64,000 nt of DNA, taken from contig NW_003314318.1 in the NCBI RefSeq assembly GCF_000143415.4, positions 868,001 to 932,000 of the forward strand, given 5' to 3'. Below, one piece after another: positions 12,950 to 54,700 of this stretch; within the stretch, counting starts at the first letter, position 1; each line of letters begins with the position of its first letter. Source of the DNA: Selaginella moellendorffii. Its lineage: Eukaryota; Plantae; Lycopodiophyta. The translations under genes were made by a program, and so were the position numbers. Below the pieces are notes generated by a model. The model searched no databases. It saw only the letters and a list, made by a program, of their open reading frames with translations, and was not told the origin of the DNA.

Positions 12950-13169
12950 TTGAAGCCGAATGGAGGCCGTGACAATCGAGGCCGGACTCGCTGGCGAATG
13001 TGCACTATGTGTGCAGCGGATCGTAGCAGCAAGGCTACTCTGCCACTTACAGTTGGAGAGTGGCGCTGAAATCTCCCGGGACGCCAAGTGGGCTGCGTGT
13101 GGGTGGCGGAGTGGGCGGCGGAGTTGGCGGCGAAGTTACAAACTGGGTGTGTCTTGAAGTGGACGCCAA

Positions 13170-13385
13170 TGCACACGAGCGCGATGCGAGCGCGAGTGTG
13201 ATGCAAGCGCGAGTGGACGCCGATGCACACGAGAAACCTGTAGAGAAGTGAGCGTGATCGCGAGTGGGAGCACGATGCGAGCGGGAGCGCGAGTGTGATG
13301 CGAGCGCGAGTGCGAGTGTGATGCGAGCGCGAGTGCGAGTGTGATGCGAGCGCGAGTGCGAGTGTGATGCGAGCGCGAGCGCGAG
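13170..13385. repeat. CG-rich GCGAGC/GTGTGAT tandem array in the 5' region of the cargo gene
   Basis: Units of gcgagcgcgagtgcgagtgtgat. Copy number differs between elements (longest in copy 1; equivalents ~35995-36150 and ~57540-57700). Confidence 0.85.
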
Positions 13386-14592: not shown

Positions 14593-14626
14593 CTAAACCC
14601 TAAACCCTAAACCCTAAACCCTAAAC
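14593..14626. repeat. Interstitial plant telomere repeat (CCCTAAA)n / telo-boxes inside the transposon
   Basis: 4 units in copy 1, 2 in copy 2 (37359-37378), 3 in copy 3 (58907-58933). Confidence 0.85.
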
Positions 14627-15920: not shown

Positions 15921-18353
15921 ATGGCCTTCAGGGTTGGGGAAAAAGTTTACATTTTGAATGGTGGGAAGAGAGTTGCAAAAGGGACCCTTGTGTCTATGGA
16001 TCGGAACTTTGTTATACACTGTCAAAGGCTTGGGGAAGGCAATGCTGCTGTATCAGTAGAGACTGTCTTCGATGGGAATGTGGTCGCTATTGAACGAGGA
16101 GAGATGGTCGTCGGGGTAAATGTTGTTGTTGCCTTGAAAAATCTTCAGAAGAAAGCAGATGTTGGGGACAGCGCAAGTGCGACGCATGTTCCCTCCGTGG
16201 ATCTTAAGAACCGTGCTACATGGATTCAGGCGAAGGTGTTTCTAAACAACCCCGAGGGGGAGGTGGTAGCTGAGGGCTTAGCCACAGTTGTCGATCCAAG
16301 AGATGCGGTTGCTAATCAAGAATTGGGCTGGGATGATATTGGAGTTGCGATTTTAGAGGTTGTTGACACAGAAGAAAACAGTCTGACTATTGGAAGCATT
16401 GTGTGGTGGAAATTGAGGCACTTAGTGTTTGAGAATGTGAAGGATTCACAATCAAACACCACTACAATTGATGACAGAACATCTCTTCATGGGAAAAGAA
16501 AGTACACCTTCCTAAAGCGCAGCCAAAGGGATCTGAGCAACGAACCGAAAAGGCAGAAAATGGCGATGGAGGTTCGAATGGTCTTGACAGTTGCTTGTTG
16601 CAAGAGGAGCTGCTGTCAACATGCTGATTGGGATGCTATTGAAGAGGAGAGAGCAAGATACAAGACATTGTCCTGGAAGGCAGCTCGCAATTTTGTGTAT
16701 GAGGCATTACGGTCATCTGTTGATGCTTCAGAACATCAGGTGGGGGGCATGGTCTTCCAGAGGGGTTTGGTCTGCATGAAGGCATGGAGAATCATTTATG
16801 GAGTCCCTCGAACCACATTCTACAGAATCAAAACTGAGTTCGAGGAACAAAGGGTTCAACAGGCAGTCCATGGGAACGACGGTACGCACAAAACCAGGGG
16901 TCATGTTGTATATGGAGAGGCAATCTTCAAGAGGTTTGTCGAGACATGTAGCGAGCAGCAACCACATAAAACCCGCCTCTTGGAAGATGGAACACGAGAC
17001 ACCCAACGAGTTCTCCCTTCCATGTATACCAAGGGGGCCATATTGGAAGATGTGAATCGGGAACTCCAGAGTAATGGCTACAGGAAGCTGAGCCAATCTA
17101 GATTTAGTAGATTGTGGAGCAACAGGTTCAGGGATATGAGTATAGGAAAGTACTCCAGCTTTTCAAAGTGTGACGAGTGCACTGCTATCAAAATGGCTTT
17201 GTCGAAGAATTCTTGCAGCGCTCAAGAGCGAGAGACGTTGGTTAGAAGGCAGCTCGACCACAACATCGAGCAGAGAAGCTGCAGGACTGCATATTATCAT
17301 AACAGGATTCTCTCCATGGAGAGACCTGACTCTTACCTCTGCATCATCCACGACAAAATGGACTAGAAAAAGACGTGCTTACTTCGACTCAATCCTGCCC
17401 CCAAGGCAATCTCTTCATCCATGCAGCTGCCTGTGTCTCTGTTTGGCATAATCGCTCATGGGCATGGTGCCCAGAACTATGGGAACTTCTTTGTACCTCT
17501 ATGGGGTGGCGGGGGTGCAAACATGATGATTGCGTCCCTAGCAAAACACTTAAGGTCTCTGCAAAGTGCGCAGACTGAGCTGAACGGCCAACCCTTGCAT
17601 AAGGCCCTTGTCGATCGAACCCCATACAGGGTTCAACTGGAGGAGGAGCAAAGGCTTGCAGTATCGCGTGGGGCCCCATGCCATCCCAGTGAATATGTTG
17701 GCCGTCAGATTGTAGGGTTATCACGTGAGGCCTCATGCCATTCCGACGAGGCTGGTCGCGCAGTGAATGCACAGCCTCATCCAAACGAAGCAGAATCTCA
17801 AGGAAGTTCTTGCGGCCGATGTGGCCTTCCACCCCATCTTCTGCTCCAAACAGACAATGCTGGCAGTGAGAACAAAAACATGTACGTTTTCGCGTACTTG
17901 GCGATGCTTGTTGCCAAAGGCATATTTGAAACGGTTACACTTGGCTTTCTCATGGTTGGGCACACTCATGAAGACGTCGATGCCATGTTCAGTCACCTGG
18001 CAGAGTCCCTCCAGCGATCCAATGTCCTCACCCTCCCACAACTCTACGATGAATTCCAAAATTGCATCAAAGGCACTGTTGAAGCTGCACTTCTGACAGA
18101 GGTTCCAGACTTCCAGAAAAGAGATGGGTGCTAAATCCAAGGGATCCCAGCATGAGCATATCGGTGGATAATGTTGTGCATGGTTGGATGCGGAAGCAGA
18201 GTGCCACCATCACCTTGCCAGACCATGCAAGAGATGCAGCAAGAGCATTCATAACCCGGGTTCAAGGTGAGATTCATTAATATTCCTTTACTAAGTTTCT
18301 AATGTATTTTATTTCAAAGTGAACAATCCGAATCTGAATCAGAGGAGGCCTGA
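15921..18353 (+). pseudogene. Sola1-like transposase, copy 1 (stop at 17364-17366, ~0.71 kb deletion and frameshift near 18112)
   Basis: Motifs HDKMD, LQTDNAGSENKN and GHTHEDVDAMFS. Lesions defined by comparison with copy 2. Confidence 0.85.
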
Positions 18354-18568
18354 TATAGTGTGTGAGGTAAAACAAAGATGATGTGACATATGCATTTACC
18401 AATCACACGTGCATAAATCTAATAATATGGCGTGTGGCCCATATTAATGGCACATAAACCCATATTGTGGGCTTATGTACTTTATGTACCATCATTCCCT
18501 TGCAGCGTGTGTGTTGGTTTCCTTTTATAACACAACGAACTCCATATTTTAGGGTGAAGAGCGTTCTC

Positions 18569-18826
18569 ATGGCAAGCACAAAATCTGTAAGTGAGGCAGA
18601 AAAGGAGACGGAGAAGGAGATAGGTGAAAATGTAGAATATATAAGTCTTCCAAACTCCCCGTACTATACTCCAGGTGATCATTTTTCTGAACAAACGGCA
18701 ATATTAACAACTATCGAGAACGCCCCAGTAACGTCAGAGACAACAATCCAAAGCAAAACAACTGACCCGGAGAAGGATGATAGTACCGCTGAGAGTACCA
18801 AAAAGGAGGTGTCCACTAGCGCTTAG
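18569..18826 (+). CDS. Small acidic/Thr-rich ORF (85 aa) near the right end of the transposon
   Basis: MASTKSVSEAEKE...EVSTSA is open in all three copies (42066-42323, 62951-63208) and is preceded by a ttttag acceptor. No family recognised. Confidence 0.3.
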   Translation: MASTKSVSEAEKETEKEIGENVEYISLPNSPYYTPGDHFSEQTAILTTIENAPVTSETTIQSKTTDPEKDDSTAESTKKEVSTSA

Positions 18827-20132
18827 GCTTATAATGGCATGTGCCCTCATGCCATTTACTTGATCACCAAATACCTTTTTCCCTTTGCACTAGTATATCT
18901 TAATACCGGTATGAGAAATAGAATGGCATGTGCCCTCAGGCCTTTTACTAAATCACCTTTGAAAGAAATGCAAGCCTCTATGTCGTAAAAAAAAGGTACT
19001 AGAGAAATTCCTTAATAATATGAATGTTATTTAGTTTCATGAAAATACACTAAGGGTGGTCAAATGAGTTAAATGACTTCTCCAGACTAGCAATGCCTCT
19101 TGCTACACCTTCACAATTAGATTCGTTAGAAAAAGATAACATTGAATAATATCTAAATGTTCTCACCATTAAGTGATATGTCTGGCTAATAGGAATGACA
19201 TTCATCTTGGAAAGCTCACCACACGCTCAATGAACAAACAAATAGTGTGTGCGCGCATGCCATCGCTCTTCTTTAGCTTCAGATTCGGCTTGTTCACCTT
19301 GACAATGAGATTTATTATACAACCAGATGGACTCAGTCTGGACATAAAGTCACCGCGCTAGTCACCATGCCCCAGATATGTCTAGCCCCTGGACAAAAAA
19401 CATATAATTTCACGTCATTTTCAAATACTTGAAAATTTGTACCTAGTCCCATTTTACTGAATAAATCCCACTTTAACGAAATAGAGCTTCAATCCCCCTC
19501 CCCGGGTTAGACTGAACTTAAGGTTTGGCTACACTCCCCGTAGGCACAAGCAGCCAAACACACCAAGCTTCCATATTCCTAACATCCCTTGGTACCACAA
19601 GACTTGATCATGGGACCCTTTAAATCCCAAGTCTTGGGTGCAACACTTGCTTTGGGACACTGGGGTGAAACACCGTGGCCTAATGGCCTGGTATAGGTAC
19701 CTCTACCCCCCCACTTCCATCCCGAAGGGAAGGTCCAAGCCCCTAGGAAGGGCGAGGACCAATGAGCCACAAGGTACTCAAGTGGGGCACCACTTCACAT
19801 AAGCCTGGAACACTGCAATCAGTTTCCCTTTCGGGGGTGGGAGTTGCTCTTGAGCACTTCCTTGGGTGGCCCCTCCGGCACCACCTGAGTCCATGCTCAC
19901 TCCCACCCAAGGCCCCTCAGCCCCAGTCTCAACCTCAAGTCAGTTTGGAAGCACCACTGAAGAGTTCCTTCAAGACTGGTTCCTAGACCTCACTATCCCT
20001 ACTATACTTTTGGAACCCCCTGCAGCCCCCCCCCCCGCCCCGCCCCGCTGGGAGACGCACACTTTGGGCTTTCACCCCTTGACCCGTATTACTACTCGGA
20101 CTCCTCAGGCTCGATCTCAGACTCGATCTCGG

Positions 20133-21824: not shown

Positions 21825-22058
21825 CTCGGACTCGACTTCGGATTCGGTCTCGGACTCGATCTCGGACTCGATCTCGGACCCGATCTCGGACTCGACTTCG
21901 GACTCGACTTCAGACTCGGTCTTGGACCCGATTCTTGGATCTCGGACTCCGTCTCAAACTTGGTCTCCGAGTTGGCCTCGAACTCGATTCCGGACTCTAT
22001 CTCGAACTCGGTCTCAGAGTCAGTCTTGGACTCGATCTCAGACTTGGTCCCATCCGAT

Positions 22059-28213: not shown

Positions 28214-30148
28214 CTCTATCCTTCACTAAAACTGAGGAAAAGGCTCCGATACCAAATTGTAAGCCACAAATTTTTCCCTTCCAATTTGCCAACTTACCTC
28301 GTCTATCCGACCAACACCGCTTTGGCTTTAGCTAAGTTCTCTCGCCAAGGTTCCTGCCTATGGTACCAGCTCCTACTTGGTCCTACTTGGTTTCAACTAC
28401 TCACTGCACGAGCAACGGAGCGTTAGCCATCCATCCACAGATTCCCAAATCTCTCTCAATCCCCTTCCCCGGGTTAGATTGGACTTAAGGTTCGGCAACA
28501 CTCCCCACAGACACAAGCAGCCAAGGACACCAAGCCTCCATATTCCTAACATCCCTTGGTACCACAAGACTTGATCATGGGACCCTCTAAATCCCAAGTC
28601 TTGAGTGCAACACATGCTTTGGGACGCCGGGGCGAAACACCATGGCCTAACAGCCCGATATGGGTACCTCTACCCCCCCACTTCCATCCCGAAGGGAAGG
28701 TCCAAACCCCTAGGAAGGGCGAGGACCAATGAGCCACAAGGTACTCAAGTGGGGCACCACTCCACATGAGCTGGGAGCACCGCAGTCGGTTTCCCTTTTG
28801 GGAGTGGGAGTTGCTCTTGAGCACTTCCTTGGATGGCCCCTCCGGCACCAACGTAGTCCATGCTCACTCCCACCCAAGGCCCCTCGGTCCCAGTCTCAAC
28901 CTTAAGTCAGTTTGGAAGCCCTACTGAAGAGTTCCTTTAAAACTTGTTCCTGGACCTCACTATCTCTACTATACTTTGAAACCCCCTACAACCCCCACCC
29001 CCCCCCCCCCCCGCTGGGAGACGCACGCTTTGGGCTTTCACCCCTTGACCTGTATTAATATTCGGACTCGGTCTCAGACTCGATCTCGGACTCGATCTCG
29101 AACCCGACTTTGGACTCGATCTCGGACTCGATCTCGGACTTGATCTCGGACCCGATCTCAGACTTGACTTCAGACTCGATTTCGGACTCGGTCTCGGACC
29201 CGATTTTGGTTCTCGGACTCTGTCTTGAACTCGGTCTCCGAGTCGGCCTCAGACTCGATCCCGGACTCTATCTCGAACTCGGTCTTAGAGTTGGTCTTGG
29301 ACTCGATCTCAAACTCAGTCTCATCCGATGAACTCTTTGTTATTTCGGTCATGCTTTCAGGGATCCTTTAGCCTACGACACCTTGGGGAGTTGGTTCATT
29401 ATATACAACTCCTATCATCATCCACCTACGAAGGACAAAGTGGATGATTTGTTTATCCCATTTTATAGTATGTGGTTTATCTAAAGAGATTCTTACTTAG
29501 TGGAAAGGTCTATATCGGTGTTGTGGCAAATTGGACCATAAGTTTATGAGGTTTGACATGACATCCAATAGGCCGATCCTCTAGAAATTATGCATATGCA
29601 ACAAGTAAAACACTTTGTATAAAGGGATCAGGAACAATTCGCACCACCTACAGATCCATCAATACCTCTTCCTGATGTTCCTTCAGATCCGAGCCCATCC
29701 ATAAGAGAACCCTAATAAAGCTCTATTTCGTTAAAGTGGGAATTGTCATTATCCCACTTGTAAAATAAGGTTTCCAAACCTTTATATAGTATATAAATAT
29801 AACAAAATTCAACTGCATTGAGGCACATGCCATTTTATTTTAAACAAGGAAATGTCTACTCAATCACTTCTCACTGCTTCACCTCTCTCTTCTCCTTGTC
29901 ATTGTCGTCCAATTTCTTTCCATCCTTTTAATATTGGCTCAGTTGCTCCGAGTCTAGGTGGAGCCCAAGTCCCCATTCAATCTTTACTTTCCCCTTATTA
30001 ATAAAACAACTTCGTAGACTTCCAATAACATGCTGTAACACTTCTAGTATAATGCAAATCCTCTCAAAGAATTGTCTTTTAATATTAATACAATGGCATG
30101 GAACCCCATGCCATAATAAGTTACATTTTTAAATAAATACATGCCATC

Positions 30149-33100
30149 TCAAACTGTTATTTTTTGCCTCCAACGCCTATACAATAATCTTGGAATTTCA
30201 TCACTCTCCACACTATCAGGATTTAAACCCAATAGTAATGCCATCTCTTCTCTAATACGTCCACGCTCATGTTCAGTGGTCGAAGAACCCATCCGGTTGA
30301 GCAGATTATGGAGATGCGGATAGTGCTTGGCTAGACAATATACATGCCATAAATGATGACTGGTGTCTGTCCGATCAAATGGCTTCTGATATACTGTTCC
30401 ATCTGCCATTTGGTTGATTTCTGCAGCCACCTCCTGGACTGGCCGGTTCTCTATCACCATCGCTTCAAGCCGTTTTGCAAGGTCCCCCAGAACATACGGT
30501 TTCTTCTCCCTAGTTTCCATACTGCAAGAGATGGGGTGCACTGCATATGTGTGCGTGTTCGCTGCAGTTTTAATCGGCGAGTCATCGATGATGAGGATTT
30601 CACTTGACCTAGCAGTCCGGTTCATCACTACAGCCTCTGCCTTGACGAAGATGGGCTTGCTACCCCTCACATGGACCATAGTCAAGCAATCCTCCTGCTT
30701 TAGGAGAAAGTCAAATGGTAATATTACTCGCGTCTGATCGTGCATCATCTGTAGCAACGTTAATGCATTGTGGCGCATCATGGATGTCCAAACTCCCAAT
30801 TGCAAATTGAACCCGGCCCTCTGTTTTAAGTGTCGCATGGTCATTATTAGATCCCGCAGTTTCTCCCGTGTGATTAATGTGAATCTGTCTCTTTTGACCA
30901 ACTTGCGACCGCAGGCTTTGGAGGGTGCAGTGACATTCGAGGACGAGCCACGCTCATGGGAGAAAAGGACACCGTTCAGATCAAAAACGATACAGTACTT
31001 TCGCCGTGACTCTGAAATGAAATGCGTTAGCATAAAAAATGGTACAAGTCAATTTTACCATCTACAATATTAGCGAATGGTGCTCCCGATGGTCGTTGAG
31101 AGGGTTTTGGTCGAGGAAACGTGAAGGGCGGAAATACTCTCCTCTGCAATGTGGGGTCAATCACATCCGATGGCGTGTGGGCACATGCCATTTCAGCTGT
31201 AGACTCTGGTACAACTGGCTCAACAGTGGCATGGGGTGGTTCCGATGGCGTGTGATCACACGCCATTTCAGCTGGTGCCTCCGTTGGCAAAGTGGACATG
31301 ACCGAACAGGCAGCAGGGGCGGTGTAGGGAGGTTCCAACGGCGCGTAGTCAGACGATTGGGCACACGTTGGAAATGAGGATACGACCGGCTCGGCGGCTG
31401 GGGCGGCCTCATGCGGGTCCAATGGCGCCTGGTCACCGTCAGTTGGATACGTGGACAAGATTGACTCAGTGGTATGGGCAGCATCAAGTGGAGCGTGGTC
31501 AGCTTGCTTGGCGTTGATATGGATAGTAGCCTCCACCAGCTCTGATGACTCTTGCAGGCAAGTAGAGTCCACTGGCGGATCCATATGCATGTCCAAATAT
31601 CTCCCTTCGATTGAGATGGTATCCTCCCGTGCTACTAAAAACAAACTCATTAGCACATTGAATCGACTATACTGTATTTACCATCAACTGCTATTGAGGA
31701 ACTAGGACCGATATCACTTGGGCGCACTGCTGATTCTGAAGGATTGGACATACGTTTCGACCCTTGCTTGGCACTATCCTTCCTCGACACTAAAGGCTAG
31801 AGTTTGTATCTTAATTCAACTGAATAATCTCTACTTACCATTTCTTCTGCGACCTACATGGACAATGTTAGAAATGGTAAAAGGTTAGGAATGGATGTAC
31901 TATTATTTACCTGATGGTTTGTCTTGTATGACCTTCCTCCGCTGCTCTTTGGCCACCTCAGGCTGGCCATCATCGTCATCATCGTCATCGTCGTTATTGT
32001 GATCGTCACCATTGTGAGGACCATCCAAGTCCTCTTCGTCCTCCTCTTCTTCGTCCTCCTCTTCTTCGTCCTCCTCTTCTTCGTCCTCCTCTTCTTCGTC
32101 CTCCTCTTCGTCCTTCTGCTCTTCCTGCTCATTATCTTTCTCTGGCTCCTCATCCCCCTCTTGCATTTCTTCCATAGGCTGCTCAGGCTGGATTGCTTGT
32201 TTTTCCAGGACCATCTTGGAAAAATCATCTGGCCGAGTCTCCATCTCAAAATACAAGACATCCATAGCCTGTTTTAGTGCGTGACCTAGGACCGTATCCT
32301 CACCCGACTGTCTTAACATGGTTTCTGCACGTTCTTGCACCCTTCGAAGACGACGAGATGAGAAAAACGTGGCCCTGACTTGAAAAGCATCCCTCATCCA
32401 TTGTACCTCTCCATTGAGATTGGGGAAGGGGAGTCCGCCATAGGAATCTGAGTCAGAAGGTGGTGACTGGCTCCTTTCACTCAGCCCTTGATCTGCAATG
32501 AATGGCATGAGCACACACGCCATAACCGCGAGGCATTACCTATCATCTTTTCGTTGCCCTTCTTCCTTTTCGAATCAAACGCCTCTGATCCCGACGACTG
32601 TCCAACGTGCTTTCGCTTTTTATGACCACTGTCAGTTTGAGCTTGGCTGGTGCTTGCCTGTTTTGCCTTTGAAGAAGTGTCTCCTGCAAGGAATGGCATG
32701 AGACCACACGCCATTGCAAATATAATTTGTACCTCCTTTTTTCCTATTGCTTGTCTGTTTGTCCTTCTTCGACGCGCCACCAGTGCGCTTTTCAGTCCTC
32801 GTGTCTGAATATTCACAACGATCTATAATCAAAATGGCGTGAGGCCTCACGTGACCTTACCTTGTGCAAGTTGTGACCTCGGCCTAACATCAGTAGCTGT
32901 TAACGCCGTTTCAGCATCTGGGGGTGGCCACGCTCCTGCATACAGAGCTTGTGAGATAACATTTAAACTTAAAGTGCGTACTCACCAGGTTCGTAGAGAA
33001 GATACTGTTTTTCTTTGGCAACTGTAATTATATGCTCCATTGAAGTCACCTCTTCAATGGAGTTTGTCACCGCAACACACGGGACACCCTTGAGTAGTGC

Positions 33101-35769
33101 GGCTCGAAAGAATAGTCTGCCGCAGTTGTACTCGACAACGCATTTGCCCTTGGAGTCACCCGCTATTGCGTTGAAGACCCAGCTGAGCATTTCCCATGCT
33201 GCACCTGGAGCTTTCTTTGGATTCGAAAGCTCCATAGCCGTCTTCAGTTCCTCAGGCACGGGTAAATTGACCTCCCTCAGATCAATTCGATCGGCTTTGT
33301 TGAACGAAGCTGGGAAGTCACTCCAGTCCCACTCTGCTGCAGGACCAATAACAAGGGCGACTGTGAAGATGCGGACATTCGTCGGTATCTTCTTCTTAGC
33401 CATTATCCCATGGATCTCCCGCATCTCCTTGCCTTTCAACCGAGCCTTCACCTCGTTCAAGGCCTTCCAGAACTTGTGATAGGATTCGGAGTCGTAGATC
33501 ATATAGTGGACTGAAGATTCCACCTCCGCAAGTCCCACCATTAAGTCAATGATGGAGCTGACTTCGTCTGCATGAGTGATCTCCTCGTTTGTGAAGTCCA
33601 TCACACAAAAGATGTTCTTGACCTGCTCATCTCCGCGGGAAACGATGCTCCTCCACCTTTGATCCTCATCCGAATTCACGTATACCCGGTAAGGTTCTCG
33701 ATAGGCCTCTGCTGCGGGGTCGAGCTGTTTCTGAAGCCGGCGGTCGACATCCCTCTTAATGAAATTTGGATACTGATCCAACTTCTCAGCTTTACTTTTC
33801 GTGGCATCCCGCAGCAGATCGATGAACTTGGGGGCCCCCTTCACGTACTCGTCGATGTCTTCATTTGACAAGTCCAGCTCTTCCATCATCTCTTGCGTGG
33901 TGTCGATGCTCACCCTCGCCACGGCCACTTGCTTGAAGATCCAATCCTTCAATAGTGCACGAGCTCTCAGAGTCGTGCACAAGTCCTCGTATGTCACAAT
34001 ATGGCCGGGAGTCATTTTGGTCTTGTTGAAGACTACCTCACCAAGTAGAAGAGCATTAGCCACTGTCAGAAGGTCGTCGTCGTCTAGAGACCGCGAGAAA
34101 CGCAAGGCGTTGAGCTTCAAATCATTGGGCTTCCGGCCGTCCTCCACACCCATTGAGTTTAGCAACTCCCCGTCATGGTACCTCCTTAGCACATCTACCC
34201 ATTTGTCAAAAACAACTTTTGTCGCGAGTAGAATGTTATGGATGCTGAGTGTGTCATTGACCCCCAGTGTTTTCGAGAGAAGACTCGAGAATTCCTGCAA
34301 TGGAAATGGCGTGAGGCCACATGCTATGCCACATGCAACGAGGCTTACCTGCCAGGCGCTAGTTGCTAGTGCACGTCCTTGTCCTGGTTTTTGTGGCTTC
34401 TTCAGTTGAACCCAGAGCTTCCGTGTTCGTGCCAATGTCTCGTGCAGACCCGATTTGTAGCACGTTTCTTGCTTGACATTCTGCGCGTGGGAGATGTATA
34501 TGATAGATCGGAGGGGCGAGTTGCCTTTTATCAGGCGGACAACTCTTGTCTTGAAGACTTTCTTCACCTCCTCGCCCACCATAATATCCACAACTATCTG
34601 TTGCATCGCCAAACTAGAATGCTGCCCGGAGACGGCATAGAACCGGATGTTCTGATCGTCCAACACCTTCCTATTGATCAAGTCTGGAAACCTCGTCTCG
34701 CCCTTCATTGTTCGGTAGTAGGGGATCACGTCTGCGATGTCGGGTGTTACTGGACTTGCCAACATCTTCTGCTTCAGTTTCTCCACCCACTCATCAGATA
34801 CTAGCCTGTGGTTGTATTTGCTTTGGATGTCGATACGGCTCACGTCGATTGTATATACTTTGTTGGAATAGTAACAAGTACTATTATCTGCGACGATTTT
34901 TGCTGCCTCTTCTTGCTCTTTCTGCTCTTTGCGGCTCTTCTTTTTGGTGGGTGTAGTGTTCGAACCCGAGGCAATGGCATCACCGAGTAGCTTCTTTTTT
35001 GGAGCAGCAGAGTCGGACGTCGGCTTGAGCTTGACCACCCTTTTCTGCTTCGGGGTAGTTTCCAGATCGACCCCCTTCCCCTTCGCTTCGCAAACTGGAG
35101 GCACTCTCAACGGCTCAATGTTGGAATATAGTTTTTGAACATCGCCGTAGGTGAGGTCCGTGGATTCCATGTGATCTTCATAGACCCGCAGCGTCTTTGA
35201 AATTGTGGGCCTCCTGGACAACCTCTCCCTAGCTCCCTCTAGGAATTCCTCATAGCCGCTGCCCCCCTCCGGGAAGCCGCTAGGATGTGCAAGGTGGATC
35301 TTGAAGGCGGACGCTGTCTCTACCACAAGTGCCAGTCCATATTCTTGCATGGAACTGCATGGAGTGTCTGTCACTTAGATGAGGATCCCCATGCATTCTT
35401 TTCTCCCACCATCTGTGTTGTACAGCATCAGATCCTCGCCTTCCATCCCGAAAGTCCAACTGGTGAGCTCCTCCCCCTTCTCTGCATCCACATTGACAGT
35501 GGTTGGAAGAAGAACGCAATTCCTCGCCTGTTCAAAAATGCACAACAATTAGAGCTGACAGATGAAAAGCTAGCAGCTGGAAATAACGTGAGGCCACACG
35601 CCATTCACCACTGCATCAGATGTCTTGAGGCTGCATCCTAAGATGGCGTGAGGCTACACGCCATCTGTAACCGGACTGCACTCGAGAGCCCAATCGGTGC
35701 ATGCCAATGTTGCTACTGAATGGCATGTGGCCTCATGCCATTTTCTACTTCGTCTAAAAGACTTACCAT
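30149..35769 (-). CDS. Cargo gene copy 2: predicted 11-exon, ~1647-aa ParB-like / amino-MTase-like / FCP1(NIF)-HAD protein (one premature TAA at 35375-35377)
   Basis: Exons: 35767-35769 (ATG), 34349-35527, 32986-34294, 32861-32935, 32733-32822, 32540-32683, 31911-32492, 31839-31853, 31682-31789, 31059-31634, 30149-31011. All introns are GT-AG; total 4944 nt in one frame. Motifs YNHR...AVSGQHSSLA...HAQNVKQE (ParB-like), KAP...VVEYNCG...AALLKG (MTase motif X/I-like), DLNGVL, VWTS and IIDDSP.K (FCP1/NIF). Confidence 0.8.
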
Positions 35770-38708
35770 TTGAAGCCGAATGGAGGCCGTGACAATCGAG
35801 GCCGGACTCGCTGGCGAATGTGCACTGTGTGTGCAGCGGATCGTAGCAGCAAGGCTACTCTGCCACTTACAGTTGGAGAGTGGTGCTGAAATCTCCCGGG
35901 ACGCCAAGTGGGCTGCGTGTGGGTGGTGGAGTGGGCGGCGGAGTTGGCGGCGAAGTTACAAACTGGGTGTGTCTTGAAGTGGACGCCGATGCACACGAGC
36001 GCGATGCGAGCGCGAGTGTGATGCAAGCGCGAGTGGACGCCGATGCACACGAGAAACCTGTAGAGAAGTGAGCGTGATCGCGAGTGGGAGCGCGATGCGA
36101 GCGGGAGCGCGAGTGTGATGCGAGCGCGAGCGCGAGTGTGCGAGCGCGAGTACAAAGCAAAATGCAAAACCTAACCTCACATGCGCGAAATGTCACAACG
36201 GTTGGTAATCTCGCCACGTCATCATTCCTCGGACTTGGGCGCCACCATTAATTTCTGGATTGCCGCGCGCATGCAAGCACGCAAAATCCAAAAGAAATCC
36301 GCAACGTCATCATTCCTCGGACTGCATGCACGCGAAATCCAAAAGAAAGATCATGATTGGGATATCATTTAATACCCTCGCTATATTTATACCATGCATG
36401 ATTGGATATTCCAAAGCATCTTGTATTTCCAAAAATGGCAGATGTTCAGCTAAATAAAGAAATTCTATCTGTTTCTATTTTTCTCTCAAATCAATATTAT
36501 AGCGTGTGGGCTCATGCAATTTTGAACCAAAGAAACCTAAAAAACGTTGGACCCAAAATATTTTGAAAAAACCCAAAAAACCCTAAACATTTTAAACCCA
36601 AAAATCCAGGCGTCCTGTGGCGTTATTCCTTGAATGGCGTGTGGGCGCATGCCATTTTCAGGGCCAAATGCTGAATGGAGAAAAATTCCCTTTCAGTGCA
36701 AATGCTGCAAGAGGCAGATGCCGAGCACAAAGGACTGTAACTACCTCACATGACACAGATAAACTTTTCTCTATTTGGCAAAGATAAACTTTATAGCGTG
36801 TGGGCTCATGCAATTTTGAACCCAAAAAATGCACCAAAAAATTCTCGGCGTCATCTGGCATTATCTCTTGAATGGCGTGGGGCCGCATGCCATTTTCAGG
36901 GGCACATAGGAGTATATTCCTAGGATATTCTGACACGCGCGAGATTTTTTTGAGTTTTCTGGAGATCCAACCGTTAGATTGCAACTAGATTTTACAAAAT
37001 GGTATACAATGTCTTTCTTGATGACCCTGCAAAGAAGCATCTCAATCGGACACCACATGAGACCACACGAGCCTTACAATGTTTCAGGGGCATTTGCCAT
37101 AGATCCGACCGTTATTTTGCTCCAAGATTTTACAGTTTGGTGTGCATTGACCTTTCCATCGACACTACAAAGGGACATCACAATCAGATGCAGGATCACA
37201 AGAAACTAACTTCACTAACTCTGGTTTCACCAAGATCTACGTAAAGAGTTATGAAATGAAAGGACCCTCTCTATTGAAATGTGTTTATGGTCCTAGTGAC
37301 ATATCAAAGGATTTTGCATCAAGTTCTGTATTTGCATGTTTATCAAGCTACTGAATTGCTAAACCCTAAACCCTAAACATGTGGCAAATGCTGCGTGAAG
37401 AAAGATGCCCTTTCTGGGCAAATGCTGTAAGAGGCAGATGCCGAGCAGATGTATCTCAGGCTAGCGAAGGGGACGAACGAAAGCTAGCTATAAACATGAC
37501 GGGATGCAAATAGATTACTAGGCTGGTCCTGCGAAAATCAAAAACCATAATTGAAAACATTGAAAATGCAAAAAGAAAGGTTTATAATATTTTTGAATTT
37601 TAGGCAACCAAAGGAATGTAAGTAGGGCATGTGTTTGTAAGTTTAAAAATGCCTCAACCACTTAAATTCCCAAGTAAATAAAGCTGTTTCTATTTTTGGT
37701 ACAGGTAAACTTTATAGCGTGTGGGCTCATGCAATTTTGAACCCAAAAATGCACCAAAAAATGCTCGACTAGCATTATTCTTTGAAATGGCCTGTGCGTG
37801 AGTTCGAGCATTATTCTTTGAATGGCGTGTGGCCTTATATTGCCATAAATGGACGTACACACACAGCGTAATTATTCCTTTACACGGCGAATAATCTTGG
37901 CGCGGATCGCTGACATGGCATGGCAAAGTTCGAATCACTGACATGGCACAGCTGGATCGAGGCAAGGACATGATGTGACAAAGCTCAACCTCTGACAGCA
38001 AAGTCTAGAAGCTACTCAGTTTGAAATTTGTCAGAGGAATCATAAGATCTGGTTTGTCAGAGGATTTGATGTGACGTTCAAGCGTGTGTTATTTTTGAAT
38101 TCTCGAACTCATTCCTAGGTCTATCATTTTTGTGCGCCGTGTTCTTGGTTCCGCTGAGCGCAGTGAGCGCTGCTTGTGTAAGCAGCGTTGTGGGCTGTGG
38201 TTTATGCGTCTACGAGCGGTTGCGGCATTGCGAGCGCCATTGCGAGCGGCAGTTTATGCGAGTGGCAGTTTGTGCGAGCGGCGCTACGAGCAGTTGCGGT
38301 GTTGCGAGCGGCGCTACGAGTAGTTGCGGTGTTGCGAGCGGCACTGTCTTTGGTGTGGCTACCGCTTCCTCTTGATATTCGGCACTTGTGCTTCCTGGTA
38401 TGTTCACCATGGAATGGCTTAGGACCACATTTAGAAATGGCATGAGGCCACATGCCATCTTGGGCCCTTGCAATTTCATGGCTAGCGTATTGTCATGTAT
38501 GTTTTTACTTGCCTGCAGCTGTGTGTATATCAAGATGGCATGAGGCCTCATGCTAATTTTGTGAATGCGAAATTTCACGTGGGTGTCAATAGCATGTTTG
38601 AATAATGGCATGTGGCCTCATGCTATTGAGGTTGTTTGGTATGTTATGATTTAGGCCATTCTCCAATCATTTTTTGTATGGTCTTAACTTCTTTTCTGCA
38701 CTTTCAGA

Positions 38709-41700
38709 ATGGCCTTCAGGGTTGGGGAAAAGGTTTACATTTTGAATGGTGGGAAGAGAGTTGCAAAAGGGACCCTTGTGTCTATGGATCGGAACTTTGT
38801 TATACACTGTGAAAGGCTTGGGGAAGGCAATGCTGTTGTATCAGTAGAGACTGTCTTCGATGGGAATGTGGTCGCTATTGAACGAGGAGAGATGGTCGTC
38901 GGGGTAAATGTTGTTGTTGCCTTGAAAAATCTTCAGAAGAAAGTAGATGTTGGGGACAGCGCAAGTGCGACGCATGTTCCCTCCGTGGATCTTAAGAACC
39001 GTGCTACATGGATTCAGGCAAAAGTGTTTCTAAACAACCCCGAGGGGGAGGTGGTAGCTGAGGGCTTAGCCACAGTTGTCGATCCAAGAGATGTGGTTGC
39101 TAATCAAGAATTGGGCTGGGATGATATTGGAGTTGCGATTTTAGAGGTTGTTGACACAGAAGAAAACAGTCTGACTATTGGAAGCATTGTGCGGTGGAAA
39201 TTGAGGCACTTAGTGTTTGAGAATGTGAAGGATTCACAATCAAACACCACTACAACTAATGACAGAACATCTCTTCATGGGAAAAGAAAGTACACCTTCC
39301 TAAAGCGCAGCCAAAGGGATCTGAGCAACGAACCGAAAAGGCAGAAAATGGCGATGGAGGTTTGAATGGTCTCGACAGTTGCTTGTTGCAAGAGGAGCTG
39401 CTGTCAACATGCTGATTGGGATGCTATTGAAGAGGAGAGAACAAGATACAAGACATTGTCCTGGAAGGCAGCTCGCAATTTTGTGTATGAGGCATTACGG
39501 TCATCTGTTGATGCTTCAGAACATCAGGTGGGGGGCATGGTCTTCCAGAGGGGTTTGGTCTGCATGAAGGCATGGAGAATCATTTATGGAGTCCCTCGAA
39601 CCACATTTTACAGAATCAAAACTGAGTTCGAGGAACAAAGGGTTCAACAGGCAGTCCATGGGAACGACGGTACGCACAAAACCAGGGGTCATGTTGTATA
39701 TGGAGAGGCAATCTTCAAGAGGTTTGTCGAGACATGTAGCGAGCAGCAACCACATAAAACCCGCCTCTTGGAAGATGGAACACGAGACACCCAACGAGTT
39801 CTCCCTTCCATGTATACCAAGGGGGCCATATTGGAAGATGTGAATCGGGAACTCCAGAGTAATGGCTACAGGAAGCTGAGCCAATCTAGATTTAGTAGAT
39901 TGTGGAGCAACAGGTTCAGGGATGTGAGTATAGGAAAGTACTCCAGCTTTTCAAAGTGTGACGAGTGCACTGCTATCAAAATGGCTTTGTCGAAGAATTC
40001 TTGCAGCGCTCAAGAGCGAGAGACGTTGGTTAGAAGGCGGCTCGACCACAACATCGAGCAGAGAAGCTGCAGGACTGCATATTATCATAACAGGATTCTC
40101 TCCATGGAGAGACCTGACTCTTACCTCTGCATCATCCACGACAAAATGGACCAGAAAAAGACGTGCTTACCTCGACTCAATCCTGCCCCCAAGGCAATCT
40201 CTTCATCCATGCAGCTGCCTGTGTCTCTGTTTGGCATAATCGCTCATGGGCATGGTGCCCAGAACTATGGGAACTTCTTTGTACCTCTATGGGGTGGCAG
40301 GGGTGCAAACATGATGATTGCGTCCCTAGCAAAACACTTAAGGTCTCTGCAAAGTGCGCAGACTGAGCTGAACGGCCAACCCTTGCATAAGGCCCTTGTC
40401 GATCGAACCCCATACAGGGTTCAGCTGGAGGAGGAGCAAAGGCTTGCAGTATCGCGTGGGGCCCCATGCCATCCCAGTGAATATGTTGGCCGTCAGATTG
40501 TAGGGTTATCACGTGAGGCCTCATGCCATTCCGACGAGGCTGGTCGCCCGGTGAATGCACAGCCTCATCCAAACGAAGCAGAATCTCAAGGAAGTTCTTG
40601 CGGCCGATGTGGCCTTCCACCCCATCTTCTGCTCCAAACAGACAATGCTGGCAGTGAGAACAAAAACATGTACGTCTTCGCGTACTTGGCGATGCTTGTT
40701 GCCAAAGGCATATTTGAAACGGTTACACTTGGCTTTCTCATGGTTGGGCACACTCATGAAGACGTTGATGCCATGTTCAGTCACCTGGCAGAGTCCCTCC
40801 GGCGATCCAATGTCCTCACCCTCCCACAACTCTACGATGAATTCCAAAATTGCATCAAAGGCACTGTTGAAGCTGCACTTCTGACAGAGGTTCCAGACTT
40901 TAAGGGGTTTGTAAGAGGCTACATCAGGGATGGATCCGAAACGCTGATTGGCCACTCCAAGCCTCTTCAGTTTCATTTCAGCATGTGTGACGGTGCTCCA
41001 GTGATGAGGTACAAGATGAGAGAATGGGACACAGTGTGGCTGCCAGTGGACGGCATTGAACTCTTCAAGAGAGATCCCATAACTGGGGAACCTATGATTC
41101 CTCAGGGTTCCCCACGGCCGATGCACCCGGATGGACTCAAAGACCAGGAAAGTATAGTGGCCGGGATTAGACAGCATATTGCCTTCTGGAAGAGGGGGTT
41201 GGTGTTTGGTGGAGAATCCTATTTTCAGAGGTGCAAGCCTTTGCTCGAATACTGGGAGAAGATTATATCTGCTATCCAAAATGGGCCGGTTGTATATGAA
41301 GAATTGGAAGAGTCCTTTTGGCCAGAACCCAGAGCACCAGATAGTAGCGGAACAATGTCCTCTGGAAATGCAGTGACAGATAATGATGTTGAGGATCACT
41401 ATTGTGGGCCGAGGAACAAGAAGCCGGATTCAGCATTCAATCCAGTACAGGTTTGCAAAGGAATGGTCGTGCTTGTCAGACCCAGTAATAAAAAACAAAT
41501 GATATGGGTGGGGCGCTGCATCACTGATGCAGAGGAGGACGCGGAAACTAACTCCTTCAATGTAACTGTGGAGTGGTTCAAGCCAAGTTCCGGATATACG
41601 AAGGATTGCCTAGAAAAGAGATGGGTGCTGAATCCAAGGGATCCCAGCATGAGCATATCGGTGGATAATGTTGTGCATGGTTGGATGCGGAAGCAGAGTG

Positions 41701-41850
41701 CCACCATCACCTTGCCAGACCATGCAAGAGATGCAGCAAGAGCATTCATAACTCGGGTTCAAGGTGAGATTCATTAATATTCCTTTACAAAGTTTCTAAT
41801 GTATTTTATTTCAAGGTGAACAATCCGAATCTGAATCAGAGGAGGCTTGA
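38709..41850 (+). CDS. Sola1-like DDD transposase, ~1020-1030 aa (one CGA-to-TGA stop at 39363-39365)
   Basis: FSKCDEC, IIHDKMDQ, LLLQTDNAGSENKN, FLMVGHTHEDVDAMFS. The 4-bp TSDs fit the Sola superfamily. Probable 5'UTR intron ends just before the ATG. Probable last intron 41764-41815 (unspliced stop at 41777). Confidence 0.85.
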
Positions 41851-43156
41851 TATAGTGTGTGAGGTAAAACAAAGATGATGTGACATATGCATTTACCAAT
41901 CACACGTGCATAAATCTAATAATATGGCGTGTGGCCCATATTAATGGCACATAAACCCATATTGTGGGCTTACGTGCTTTATGTACCATCATTCCCTTGC
42001 AGCGTGTGTGTTGGTTTCCTTTTATAACACAACGAACTCCATATTTTAGGGTGAAGAGCGTTCTCATGGCAAGCACAAAATCTGTAAGTGAGGCAGAAAA
42101 GGAGACGGAGAAGGAGATAGGTGAAGATGTAGAATATATAAGTCTTCCAAACTCCCCGTACTATACTCCAGGTGATCATTTTTCTGAACAAACGGCAACA
42201 TTAACAACTATCGAGAACGCCCCAGTAACGTCAGAGACAACAATCCAAAGCAAAACAACTGACCCGGAGAAGGATGATAGTACCGCTGAGAGTACCAAAA
42301 AGGAGGTGTCCACTAGCGCTTAGGCTTATAATGGCGTGTGCCCTCATGCCATTTACTTGATCACCAAATACCTTTTTCCCTTTGCACTAGTATATCTTAA
42401 TACCGGTCTGAGAAATAGAATGGCATGTGCCCTCAGGCCTTTTACTAAATCACCTTTGAAAGAAATGCAAGCCTCTATGTCGTAAAAAAAAGGTACTAGA
42501 GAAATTCCTTAATAATATGAATGTTATTTAGTTTCATGAAAATACACTAAGGGTCAAATGAGTTAAATGACTTCTCCAGACTAGCAATGCCTCTTGCTAC
42601 ACCTTCACAATTAGATTCGTTAGAAAAAGATAACATTGAATAATATCTAAATGTTCTCACCATTAAGTTATATGTCTGGCTAATAGGAATGATGTTCATC
42701 TTGGAAAGCTCACCACACGCTCAATGAACAAACAAATAGTGTGTGCGCGCATGCCATCGCTCTTCTTTAGCTTCATATTCGGCTTGTTCACCTTGACAAT
42801 GAGATTTATTATACAACTAGATGGACTCAGTCTGGACATAAGGTCACCGCGCTAGTCACCATGCCCCAGATATGTCTAGCCCCTGGACAAAAAACATATA
42901 ATTTCACGTCATTTTCAAATACTTGAAAATTTGTACCTAGTCCCATTTTACTGAATAAATCCCACTTTAACGAAATAGAGCTTAATAGTCTTCCATCATT
43001 CTAAGATGAGGGAATGATGTGAGGTTCAAGTATACAATTACAATGCCATATACTAATATTAGCATAATAAGATTTTTGTATATAAGTTAGGGTTTTGGGC
43101 TAATTGATATACATATTTCTTATATTATTTTTCCATATTCCATGCACTCACAAATA

Positions 43157-51231: not shown

Positions 51232-51737
51232 TTCTGAACAAAAGATCCAACTACAAAATGCTTGCAAAAATCTCAATAAAGCTCTTAGTTCAAAGAAGCT
51301 CTATTTCGTTAAAGTGGGAATTGTCATTATCCCACTTGTAAAATAAGGTTTCCAAACCTTTATATAGTATATAAATATAACAAAATTCAACTGCATTGAG
51401 GCACATGCCATTTTATTTTAAACAAGGAAATGTCTACTCAATCACTTCTCCTCCCCCTGCCACTGCTTCACCTCTCTCTTCTCCTTGTCATCGTCGTCCA
51501 ATTTCTTTCCATCCTTTTAATATTGGCTTAGTTGCTCCGAGTCTAGGTGGAGCCCAAGTCCCCATTCAATCTTTACTTTCCCCTTATTAATAAAACAACT
51601 TCGTAGACTTCCAATAACATGCTGTAACACTTCTAGTATAATGCAAATCCTCTCAAAGAATTGTCTTTTAATATTAATACAATGGCATGGAACCCCATGC
51701 CATAATAAGTTACATTTTTAAATAAATACATGCCATC

Positions 51738-54700
51738 TCAGACTGTTATTTTTTGCCTCCAACGCCTATACAATAATCTTGGAATTTCATCACTCTCCAC
51801 ACTATCAGGATTTAAACCCAATAGTAATGCCATCTCTTCTCTAATACGTCCACGCTCATGTTCAGTGGTCGAAGAACCCATCCGGTTGAGCAGATTATGG
51901 AGATGCGGATAGTGCTTGGCTAGACAATATACATGCCATAAATGATGACTGGTGTCTGTCTGATCAAATGGCTTCTGATATACCGTTCCATCTGCCATTT
52001 GGTTGATTTCTGCAGCCACCTCTTGGATTGGCCGGTTCTCTATCACCATCGCTTCAAGCTGTTTTGCAAGGTCCCCCAGAACATACGGTTTCTTCTCCCT
52101 AGTTTCCATACTGCAAGAGATGGGGTGCACTGCATATGTGTGCGTGTTCGCTGTAGTTTTAATCGGCGAGTCATCGATGATGAGGATTTCACTTGACCTA
52201 GCAGTCCGGTTCATCACTACAGCCTCTGGCTTGACGAAGATGGGCTTGCTACCCCTCACATGGACCATAGTCAAGCAATCCTCCTGCGTTAGGAGAAAGT
52301 CAAATGGTAATATTACTCGCGTCTGATCGTGCATCATCTGTAGCAACGTTAATGCATTGTGGCGCATCATGGATGTCCAAACTCCCAATTGCAAATTGAA
52401 CCCGGCCCTCTGTTTTAAGTGTCGCATGGTTATTATTAGATCCCGCAGTTTCTCCCGTGTGATTAATGTGAATCTGTCTCTTTTGACCAACTTGCGACCG
52501 CAGGCTTTGGAGGGTGCAGTGACATTCGAGGACGAGCCACGCTCATGGGAGAAAAGGACACCGTTCAGATCAAAAACGATACAGTACTTTCGCCGTGACT
52601 CTGAAATGAAATGCGTCAGCATAAAAAATGGTACAAGTCAATTTTACCATCTACAATATTAGCAAATGGTGCTCCCGATGGTCGTTCAGAGGGTTTTGGT
52701 TGAGGAAACGTGAAGGGCGGAAATATCTCCTTTGCAATGTGGGGTCAATCGCATCCGATGGCGTGTGGGCACATGCCATTTCAGCTGTAGACTCTGGTAC
52801 AACTGGCTCAACAGTGGCATGGGGTGGTTCTGATGGCGTGTGATCACACGCCATTTCAGCTGGTGCCTCCGTTGGCAAAGTGGACATGACCGAACAGGCA
52901 GCAAGGGCGGTGTAGGGAGGTTCCAACGGCACGTAGTCAGACGATTGGGCACACGTTGAGTCTGTTGGAAATGAGGATATGACCGGCTCGGCGGCTGGGG
53001 CGGCCTCATGCGGGTCCAATGGCGCCTGGTCACCGTCAGTTGGATACGTGGACAAGATTGACTCAATGGTATGGGCAGCATCAAGTGGAGCGTGGTCAGC
53101 TTGCTTGGCGTTGATATGGATAGTAGCCTCCACCAGCTCTGATGACTCTTGCAGGCAAGTAGAGTCCACTGGCGGATCCATATGCATGTCCAAATATCTC
53201 CCTTCGATTGAGATGGTATCCTCCCTACTGGCTACTAAAAACAAACTCATTAGCACATTGAATCGACTATACTGTATTTACCATCAACTGCTATTGGGCG
53301 CACTGCTGATTCTGAAGGATTGGACATACATTTCGACCCTTGCTTGGCACTATCCTTCCTCGACACTAAAGGCTAGAGTTTGTATCTTAATTCAACTGAA
53401 TAATCTCTACTTACCATTTCTTCTGCGACCTACATGGACAATGTTAGAAATGGTAAAAGGTTAGGAATGGATGTACTATTATTTACCTGATGGTTTGTCT
53501 TGTATGACCTTCCTCCGCTGCTCTTTGGCCACCTCAGGCTGGCCATCGTCGTCATCATCGTCATCGTCGTTATTGTGATCGTCACCATTGTGAGGACCAT
53601 CCAAGTCCTCTTCGTCCTCCTCTTCTTCATCCTCCTCTTCTTTGTCCTCCTCTTCGTCCTTCTGCTCTTCCTGCTCATTATCTTTCTCTGGCTCCTCATC
53701 CCCCTCCTGCATTTCTTCCATAGGCTGCTCAGGCTGGATGGCTTGTTTTTCCAGGACCATCTTGGGAAAATCATTTGGCCGAGTCTCCATCTCAAAATAC
53801 AAGACATCCATAGCCTGTTTCAGTGCTTGACCTAGGACCGTATCCTCACCCGACTGTCTTAACATGGTTTCTGCACGTTCTTGCACCCTTCGAAGACGAC
53901 GAGATGAGAAAAACATGGCCCTGACTTGAAAAGCATCCCTCATCCATTGTACCTCTCCATTGAGATTGGGGAAGGGGAGTCCGCCATAGGAATTTGAGTC
54001 AGGAGGTGGTGACTGGCTCCTTTCACTCAGCCCTTGATCTGCAATGAATGGCATGAGCACACACGCCATAACCGCGAGGCATTACCTATCATCTTTTCGT
54101 TGCCCTTCTTCCTTTTCGAATCAAACGCCTCTGATCCCGACGACTGTCCAACGTGCTTTCGCTTTTTATGACCACTGTCAGTTTGAGCTTGGCTGGTGCT
54201 TGCCTATTTTGCCTTTGAAGAAGTGTCTCCTGCAAGGAATGGCATGAGACCACACGCCATTGCAAATATAATTTGTACCTCCTTTTTTCCTATTGCTTGT
54301 CTGTTTGTCCTTCTTCGACGCGCCACCAGTGCGCTTTTCAGTCCTCGTGTCTGAATATTCACAACGATCTATAATCAAAATGGCGTGAGGCCTCACGTGA
54401 CCTTACCTTGTGCAGGTTGTGAGCTCGGCCTAACATCAGTAGCTGTTAACGCCGTTTCAGCATCTGGGGGTGGCCACGCTCCTGCATACAGAGCTTGTGA
54501 GATAACATTTAAACTTAAAGTGCGTACTCACCAGGTTCGCAGAGAAGATACTGTTTTTCTTTGGCAACTGTAATTATATGCTCCATTGAAGTCACCTCTT
54601 CAATGGAGTTTGTCATCGCAACACACGGAACACCCTTGAGTAGTGCGGCTCGAAAGAATAGTCCGCCGCAGTTGTACTCGACAACGCATTTGCCCTTGGT

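Follow-up and report, generated by a model that had tools for sequence, protein, structure and literature searches.

Lineage-private palindromes in a giant Sola1-kind transposon of Selaginella moellendorffii with a ParB-like accessory gene: putative sites for self-recognition

The stretch of DNA analyzed in the present study, in the following called the window, comprises 64,000 nt of Selaginella moellendorffii (assembly GCF_000143415.4, contig NW_003314318.1, positions 868,001 to 932,000 of the forward strand), and coordinates without further specification refer to it. Self-comparison of the window revealed three copies of a transposon with terminal inverted repeats (TIRs), all in the same orientation, 12.6–13.3 kb in size and 97–99% identical, which are composed of a transposase gene, a long accessory or cargo gene divergent from it, and a dispersed array of one 22-bp palindrome. 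Copy 1 (6933..19489) is bordered by the target site duplication (TSD) CAAT, copy 2 (29718..42983; 13,266 bp and the fullest of the three) by AATA at 29714–29717 and 42984–42987, and copy 3 (51296..63871) by AAAG. A 24-nt TIR, AAGCTCTATTTCGTTAAAGTGGGA, is common to all copies and is located in copy 2 at 29718..29741 (plus strand) and 42960..42983 (minus strand), and the DNA between the copies is unrelated, save for the two long terminal repeats (LTRs) of a retrotransposon. Since the 4-bp TSDs differ and the flanks are unrelated, the copies represent independent cut-and-paste insertions. A segmental or tandem duplication of a 22-kb unit was considered as well and is ruled out by the differing flanks and TSDs. 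With TSDs of 4 bp (CAAT, AATA, AAAG) and short TIRs of 24 nt the element displays the marks of Sola1; Sola elements in general are said to make 4-bp TSDs, as Bao et al. reportedly described in 2009. Support for the assignment beyond TSDs and TIRs is indirect and consists in an accessory-gene layout that is the same as in the published Sola1-1_Ec32.

Copies 1 and 3 differ from copy 2 in a shared deletion of 709 bp within the transposase gene (copy 2 positions 40900–41612), which takes out the end of the DUF7869 domain and the next part of the transposase, as well as in several small indels. As the same deletion is present in two copies with different TSDs, a non-autonomous derivative must have transposed at least two times and must have been mobilised in trans. 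Among the copy-private substitutions (n = 246), 81% are transitions and a quarter are changes of CpG to TpG or CpA, a bias that is expected of methylated, silenced copies. The transposon family is young and was recently mobile.

The transposase gene of copy 2 (38709..41777, plus strand) consists of one frame with a single in-frame stop at 39363–39365 and contains DUF7869 at 40614–41024 (Pfam, E 2e-42). Homologues of approximately 1060 amino acids (aa) with 38–42% identity occur in liverworts, metagenomes, molluscs and stramenopiles, and by comparison with the Atlas the protein is structurally akin to DDE transposases of the ISAzo13 type.

The palindrome is a 22-bp dyad, ATGGCRTG-N6-CAYGCCAT, of which each copy holds 11 exact sites, 22 at up to two mismatches and 24 at up to three, at positions that are identical in all three copies. 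In copy 2 the 24 sites span 29812..42757, starting at 29812, 30093, 31170, 31245, 32502, 32693, 32834, 34306, 35583, 35643, 35720, 36499, 36634, 36793, 36872, 37714, 38437, 38535, 38605, 40451, 40508, 42331, 42420 and 42736. They cover the whole element with an average spacing of about 550 bp and reach their highest density between the divergent cargo and transposase genes, in the central intergenic region (36200..38708), where eight of the 24 are found, some of them inside 78-nt repeats. The window contains 44 matches at up to one mismatch, for which 100 shuffles predict 0.00, and the scan of the 25.6 kb outside the copies yielded not a single palindrome. The deletion derivatives, copies 1 and 3, kept all 24. 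An earlier sequence-only reading of this DNA had described a 13-kb TIR element in three copies with some 20–25 palindromes each and none in the flanks. Self-comparison, TIRs and differing TSDs bore out the former, the count of 24 per copy with none in 25.6 kb agrees with the latter, and the confinement of the palindrome to the element, which had also been proposed, holds within the window.

Positions 1, 7, 15, 16 and 18 of the palindrome are invariant in all 24 sites, and the only frequent variation affects the CpG of each half-site, which is changed to TpG or CpA. TIR and half-site have no sequence in common. Positions 9 and 14 are complementary in seven of the 24 sites, compared with 8.2 expected, and this lack of compensatory pairing at variable positions indicates that the symmetry stems from conserved half-sites, as for a protein dimer, and not from a selected hairpin, which was ruled out as an explanation on these grounds. 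A side observation concerns the decay of the CpGs (palindrome positions 6 and 17, copy 2), which was found to be lopsided: 11 sites retain the CpG in the left half with TpG in the right, and only two to three display the reverse. The excess falls into that half of the element which comprises the intergenic region and the transposase gene, and three of the sites are situated in duplicated repeats, hence the counts are not independent.

The cargo gene lies divergent from the transposase gene on the minus strand and extends from about 36.1 kb to 30149. A frame of 801 codons (32969..35374, minus strand), open only in copy 2, encodes a lysine-rich N-terminus resembling a nuclear localisation signal, a ParB/Srx domain, a helical domain and a methyltransferase-like domain. 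The gene further comprises an acidic stretch rich in D and E, derived from 15-nt repeats (32000..32175, minus strand), and a last frame with a NIF/FCP1-like HAD domain (30149..31033, minus strand). The sequence-only reading had put the product at about 1647 aa, and a plant cluster of 1673 aa is the second-nearest Atlas entry. Upstream of the cargo gene a GC-rich 23-nt tandem repeat, GAGCGCGAGTGCGAGTGTGATGC, was noticed (13233–13407, 36053–36158 and 57599–57727), the repeat number of which varies among the three transposon copies.

The ParB/Srx-fold domain (aa 166–306; 34457..34879, minus strand), characterised by the motif (S/D)GQHS, was modelled at a predicted local distance difference test score (pLDDT) of 87–95, as were residues 150–300 of the window protein with AlphaFold; in a first AlphaFold2 model of the full 801 aa only this domain was confident. 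All top Foldseek matches of the domain were ParB, Noc, KorB, PadC, sulfiredoxin or SbnI, and the best structural match aligned residues 37–132 of Myxococcus xanthus ParB with 172–305 of the model (Z 10.8, root-mean-square deviation 1.9 Å, 95 residues). The nucleotide-binding box GERRxR is not present; the protein has SGQHS there, and (S/D)GQHS, with G-Q-H invariant, recurs in 12 family members. We take this motif to resemble the DGQHR/DGQQR boxes of DndB and DUF262 proteins. The fold became visible only by structure prediction, because sequence searches are nearly blind to the cargo protein: neither the ParB-like domain nor its alignment matched anything in Pfam, NCBIfam, PHROGs or PDB sequences, an exhaustive HMMER search returned only 19 weak matches (best 6e-10), showing how thinly the family is represented, a word-indexed protein search with the protein of L003, a relative treated below, found L003 itself only, and two metagenome scans with ParB-domain alignments gave no confirmed relatives. 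By protein language model, the window protein neighbours phage families that combine ParB_N with an N6_N4 methyltransferase.

The helical middle domain (33794..34294, minus strand; pLDDT 70–92) is conserved and is common to the cargo protein and a host-like Selaginella gene. The methyltransferase-like fold (aa 559–791; 33002..33700, minus strand) was obtained from a second model, based on an improved alignment with relatives from five lineages. In a search other than Foldseek, beta-class N6/N4 methyltransferases made up the top 11 of 48,161 chains (Z 8.2–10.6, 174–205 residues aligned), and the Foldseek search was likewise topped by this class (best E 5.7e-4). The profile of the cargo family matched M.RsrI at E 2.4e-6, PF01555 was the top sub-threshold Pfam match in three relatives, PF01555 families make up nearly all language-model neighbours of this part taken by itself, and the order of motifs is the permuted one of the beta class with motif I last. 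The catalytic (D/N/S)PP(Y/F/W) is missing: the window protein has DFTN at the catalytic position and the relatives have DVTH, DTTS, DATT or DSAN, so that none possesses the two prolines or the aromatic residue. With a sequence of the D-x-T-x kind at this position in every member, the domain most likely lacks methyltransferase activity. For motif I the window has EYNCGR (copy 2) or EYNCGG (copy 3), whereas the relatives keep LDFFSGG; the S-adenosylmethionine loop appears to be retained there and eroded in the window. NIF (PF03031) scored 24.9 bits in Pfam, above the cut-off of 21.8 (E 1.8e-5), and had no match among PDB sequences. Its motif I is DLNGVL, with DxN instead of DxDx(T/V), and IIDDSP is kept; since DLNGVL is identical in the L003 protein, which is only 25% identical, it represents a conserved DxN variant and not decay. 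The relatives L003 and L008 likewise possess NIF. The long divergent gene opposite the transposase that the sequence-only reading had postulated, with ParB-like, methyltransferase-like and HAD parts, was thereby recovered in all its components: a minus-strand gene ending in NIF/HAD, a ParB/Srx fold, and a methyltransferase domain that turned out to be a degenerate beta-class fold.

A 40-nt block in the 5' region of the cargo gene (35834–35873) draws hundreds of reads in RNA sequencing (RNA-seq) data. These reads continue into unrelated sequence on both sides, with loose ends in 0.98–0.99 agreement, hence the block matches some abundant RNA made elsewhere and gives no evidence of transcription of the element. 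Contigs from two other RNA-seq runs are colinear with the genome and contain no splice joint.

Cargo proteins with the architecture ParB / helical / methyltransferase-like, in part followed by NIF, were found at 18–30% identity in Riccia sorocarpa (L008), Calypogeia fissa (L002) and three further contigs (L003, L005, L006), and in Riccia the gene is divergent from a DUF7869 transposase, as in the window. Several of these loci possess palindrome arrays of their own. L008 of Riccia contains GGGACGCGTCCC 35 times, at 659–13675 only and not in the 9 kb beyond, and a second Riccia locus (L007) has the same palindrome nine times. In Calypogeia GCCTCGAGA-N3-TCTCGAGGC occurs 14 times, in L005 CAACGC-S-GCGTTG occurs 26 times, including a 26-bp tandem array at the start of the gene, and in L009, a metagenome contig with a relative of the transposase, CACGGGTG-WW-CACCCGTG occurs 17 times; by chance, 0.00–0.02 matches were expected for each of these arrays. 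A cross-scan of the five motifs over nine loci was strictly diagonal, every lineage having its own, unrelated palindrome, and each of the five contains a CpG in each half. No palindromes were present in the flanking DNA of the window, L008 or L002. Element-specific motifs that differ between related families are what self-recognition predicts, and the co-evolution of motif and cargo that had been suggested for related families is in keeping with these five private palindromes in five related lineages. The arrays are partly tandem, with periods of 26 bp (L005), 28 bp (L008), 35 bp (L002) and 53 bp (L009). Those of L002 and L005 surround the cargo gene, the stretches examined revealed no transposase, and the Calypogeia copy has no recognisable transposase nearby.

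Two of these relatives call for separate remarks. The tandem palindrome clusters of L009 (933–1319 with a 53-nt period, 9276–9486 with a period of 47–51 nt) are separated by 8 kb devoid of palindromes, which may represent a nested insertion; a minus-strand gene that starts at 592 and runs past the end of the stretch could be a cargo gene. In Selaginella moellendorffii itself a gene of 451 aa is situated among ordinary host genes (L001; GL377575.1, 10001–11425). Its similarity to the cargo protein is limited to the helical and methyltransferase-like parts, it has the motif EYGCGG, similar to the window, and a short ParB-like remnant lies just upstream; repeated palindromes were not found at this locus. 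It may be a domesticated or relic copy.

The distribution of palindromes relative to the genes is peculiar. None of the 24 falls within the conserved coding blocks, which account for about a third of the element; such avoidance would be expected by chance in about 1 in 10,000 cases, though purifying selection alone predicts it. The palindrome at 34306 nearly fills a candidate mini-intron of 54 nt (34295..34348, minus strand), which is in-frame, has the borders CAG/GTAAGC...TTGCAG/G and sits exactly where the relatives have an intron after the ParB domain. Other palindromes of the cargo gene are located in a duplicated loop of 25 codons or in candidate GT..AG introns of 38–49 nt, where they precede the AG by 6–11 nt, and the two within the transposase frame encode a loop that is missing from all aligned homologues. 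Judged from the DNA alone, the candidate introns that bear palindromes are unusually short. In four lineages, namely the window, Riccia, Calypogeia and L005, palindromes are present in the intron that follows the ParB domain, and in L003 and L006 an ordinary AT-rich intron occupies the same position.

The existence of the element, its recent transposition, the domain folds, the loss of catalytic motifs, and the restriction of the sites to the element with their turnover between lineages are established. From these we infer which protein binds the sites and what binding would bring about. Dyad-symmetric sites that are private to an element and conserved within it, are exchanged from one lineage to the next and persist even inside genes are best explained by the sequence-specific binding of a dimeric, element-encoded protein. 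We therefore regard the palindromes of this Sola1-kind element as putative sites for such a protein, most likely the accessory protein, serving self-recognition or regulation, a reading that in our estimation is about evenly balanced between being right and being wrong. According to it, a young, giant cut-and-paste family, as characterised by 24-nt TIRs, 4-bp TSDs and a DUF7869 DDE transposase, would encode a nuclear multidomain protein with lysine-rich N-terminus, ParB/Srx, helical, methyltransferase-like, acidic and NIF/HAD parts, whose dimer would read the palindromes in the way dimers of ParB, Noc and KorB read palindromes of 14–16 bp, or else in the way restriction-type methyltransferases read short palindromes. 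Binding along the whole element, clustered at the presumed bidirectional promoter region, might permit recognition of the own family, and the pseudo-enzyme domains might then set the transcription or chromatin state of the element, in the sense of self-regulation or of countering silencing; engagement of RNA polymerase II (Pol II) via the NIF domain would be a further option. The accessory protein is favoured as the reader because a ParB fold and a restriction-type methyltransferase scaffold classically read palindromes, because the arrays centre on its gene where a transposase was not seen (L002, L005), and because inverted-repeat arrays in red algae follow a ParB-like gene across transposon superfamilies (10.1101/2025.02.11.637652), so that those arrays are tied to the ParB-like gene rather than to one type of transposase.

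Several observations weigh against this reading. The cargo frame is broken in two of the three window copies, and no reads of the cargo gene were found in two raw RNA-seq runs save for the spurious 40-nt block. As SGQHS replaces the GERR box for binding of cytidine triphosphate (CTP), a clamp-and-spread behaviour is not to be assumed, and the helical domain had no fold match, with no helix-turn-helix (HTH) or other DNA-reading domain identified. L003 and L006 have the cargo gene but no repeated palindromes in 4–7 kb, whereas L009 combines transposase and array, with a cargo gene, if present, beyond the stretch examined. Moreover, no locus at which both cargo and transposase could be checked has one without the other, and comparison of the relatives thus does not cleanly separate the two.

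For this reason the transposase has to be considered as the reader, and it is a serious rival, unlikely as we hold it to be. The palindromes would then be sites of the DUF7869 protein, for the assembly of a transpososome over 13 kb or for the transposase acting as a transcription factor of its own element, with an unrelated role for the cargo. Many transposases bind repeated subterminal motifs, and the window, Riccia and L009 all combine transposase and array, L009 without a visible cargo gene; copies 1 and 3, in which the intact transposase is gone, kept their 24 sites and were mobilised in trans; and according to a 2026 preprint a Mutator transposase activates transcription in a sequence-specific manner (10.64898/2026.08.24.746577). 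However, the sites are spread evenly along the element and are densest in its centre, not at its ends, the TIR does not resemble the half-site, the arrays of L002 and L005 centre on the cargo gene in surroundings where a transposase was not detected, and those of red algae follow the ParB-like gene across transposase superfamilies (10.1101/2025.02.11.637652).

Two other explanations dispense with a reader encoded by the element. The palindromes might act via the host or via nucleic acid structure, be it as targets of a host factor sensitive to CpG methylation, as a boundary, or as hairpins of DNA or pre-mRNA in splicing or small-RNA formation. The CpG in each half of every lineage's palindrome, the change of CpG to TpG or CpA as the only common variation in the window and the location of many sites 6–11 nt upstream of candidate 3' splice sites in mini-introns could be accommodated in this way, but a host factor would not account for a wholly different sequence in each lineage, the absence of compensatory changes argues against a selected hairpin, and many sites are intergenic or terminal and thus outside transcribed exons and introns; we consider the explanation quite improbable. 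Very improbable in our view is that the arrays have no function at all and represent a palindromic unit multiplied by local duplication, slippage or cruciform repair, which survived where it did no harm. Although the partly tandem arrays of L005, L008, L002 and L009 and the window sites in duplicated units of 75–78 nt would suit such an origin, and purifying selection alone would keep sites out of conserved coding blocks, the trait arose or was exchanged separately in five or more lineages of a single element family and in none of them extends beyond the element; furthermore, conservation of the half-sites is far above that of the non-coding DNA around them, five positions being invariant in 24 of 24 sites, and sites were kept despite the cost of tiny introns and of loop insertions in both genes.

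Binding by the accessory protein, the reading preferred here, can be carried further, to a version that we regard as rather doubtful. The system would be the counterpart of ParB-parS or of KorB and its operators in a transposon of land plants: a dimer on about 24 palindromes containing CpG would coat or bridge the 13 kb and shield the family from silencing, and protein and sites would co-evolve. Selection would keep sites every few hundred bases, even in mini-introns and protein loops; shielding might be exerted by the pseudo-methyltransferase together with the DxN variant of NIF, possibly as a trap for the phosphorylated C-terminal domain of Pol II; and each lineage would recognise only itself. 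KorB, for comparison, reads dispersed palindromic operators on plasmid RK2 and exerts long-range control of genes.

The LTR retrotransposon mentioned above (19489–29100) occupies the greater part of the DNA between copies 1 and 2, and its LTRs (19489–20131 and 28456–29100) are 90% identical; the left one begins exactly at the right target duplication of copy 1. In this region tandem repeats of 23 nt and 12 nt and a tandem duplication of 920 bp (90% identical) were observed (20427–20701, 21801–22073, 29025–29344 and 22058–23899).

To our knowledge, accessory genes for self-recognition or regulation are rare in transposons, and VANC is the only one understood in plants. The present results place a ParB plus methyltransferase module of bacterial or phage type, before recorded only in giant transposons of algae, in land plants as well, where the catalytic motifs are lost, a NIF domain is gained, and lineage-private palindromes are tolerated inside genes. 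The five pairs of protein and sites amount to natural 'swap' experiments on self-recognition by a eukaryotic protein with ParB fold and might serve as a toolkit of orthogonal DNA-binding modules; provided that the putative sites are confirmed as such, they would also be a case in which selection for dense binding sites shaped introns and loops in the genes of the transposon itself.

With regard to known systems, the basic module was already published in algae in 2025, and the main new result is the lineage-private palindromes of the relatives. The sequence-only reading knew of no Sola element with this module, which proved incorrect, as a gene for a ParB-like and methyltransferase protein is part of Sola1-1_Ec32, a 21.5-kb element of the brown alga Ectocarpus, where a protein of 1104 aa is encoded opposite the transposase and was suggested by the authors to bind and modify its own transposon (PMC12477816). 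By that reading's own standard the Ectocarpus and red-algal cases refute the claim of novelty, not the biology. Compared by description, both are giant Sola1-type elements with an accessory gene opposite the transposase that combines a ParB-like part with an N6/N4-type methyltransferase; unlike in the window, the host of Sola1-1_Ec32 is a brown alga, the protein has 1104 aa with no HAD/NIF reported, its methyltransferase is predicted to be active, and the term 'palindrom' appears nowhere in the text (PMC12477816). No literature report was found of members of the module in land plants, of the fusion with NIF or of the loss of catalytic motifs, nor of palindromes scattered over an entire element, introns included, or of motifs that change from lineage to lineage.

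In red algae, ParB-like accessory genes are located beside inverted-repeat arrays in several transposon superfamilies, among them PAG3, which adjoins tandem arrays in Plavaka/EnSpm elements of Bostrychia and for which self-binding was proposed (Petroll et al., 2025; 10.1101/2025.02.11.637652). PAG3 resembles the window protein in its N-terminal ParB-like domain, and its best HHpred match, 7BNR, is also among the top matches of the window protein; a PF01555 methyltransferase, as in the window module, is carried in Bostrychia elements too, there on PAG2. In contrast, the elements with PAG3 belong to another transposase superfamily, the ParB-like domain is fused to a 2-oxoglutarate (2OG) oxygenase, and the repeats are tandem and adjoin the gene, whereas those of the window are dispersed through the whole element, its introns and protein loops. 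The order of ParB_N followed by a beta-class methyltransferase is also that of the ParB-Tls methyltransferases of phages and prophages, which are given as the source from which such genes derive (PMC4738411). Unlike these, the plant family is without (D/N/S)PP(Y/F) and has an added helical domain, an acidic tract and NIF, and at the sequence level the window cargo protein had no match in PHROGs.

VANC of the Arabidopsis VANDAL elements, for which loss of DNA methylation was demonstrated and the motifs of which are short, non-palindromic tandem repeats (PMC5735166), differs from the window protein, as no homology is known or was found and the function of the latter is deduced, that of VANC demonstrated. 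Nevertheless, both systems have an accessory protein encoded by the element, element-specific motifs in non-coding parts, and turnover of these motifs between related families (PMC5735166). Finally, the window protein deviates from the bacterial ParB family in that it is without a GERR box, with no HTH identified, has extra domains, is eukaryotic and nuclear and has no partition ATPase as partner, but it is alike to ParB-parS, Noc with its NBS sites and KorB with its OB operators in the N-terminal ParB/Srx fold and in the multiple dyad sites of similar size on the very replicon by which the protein is encoded.

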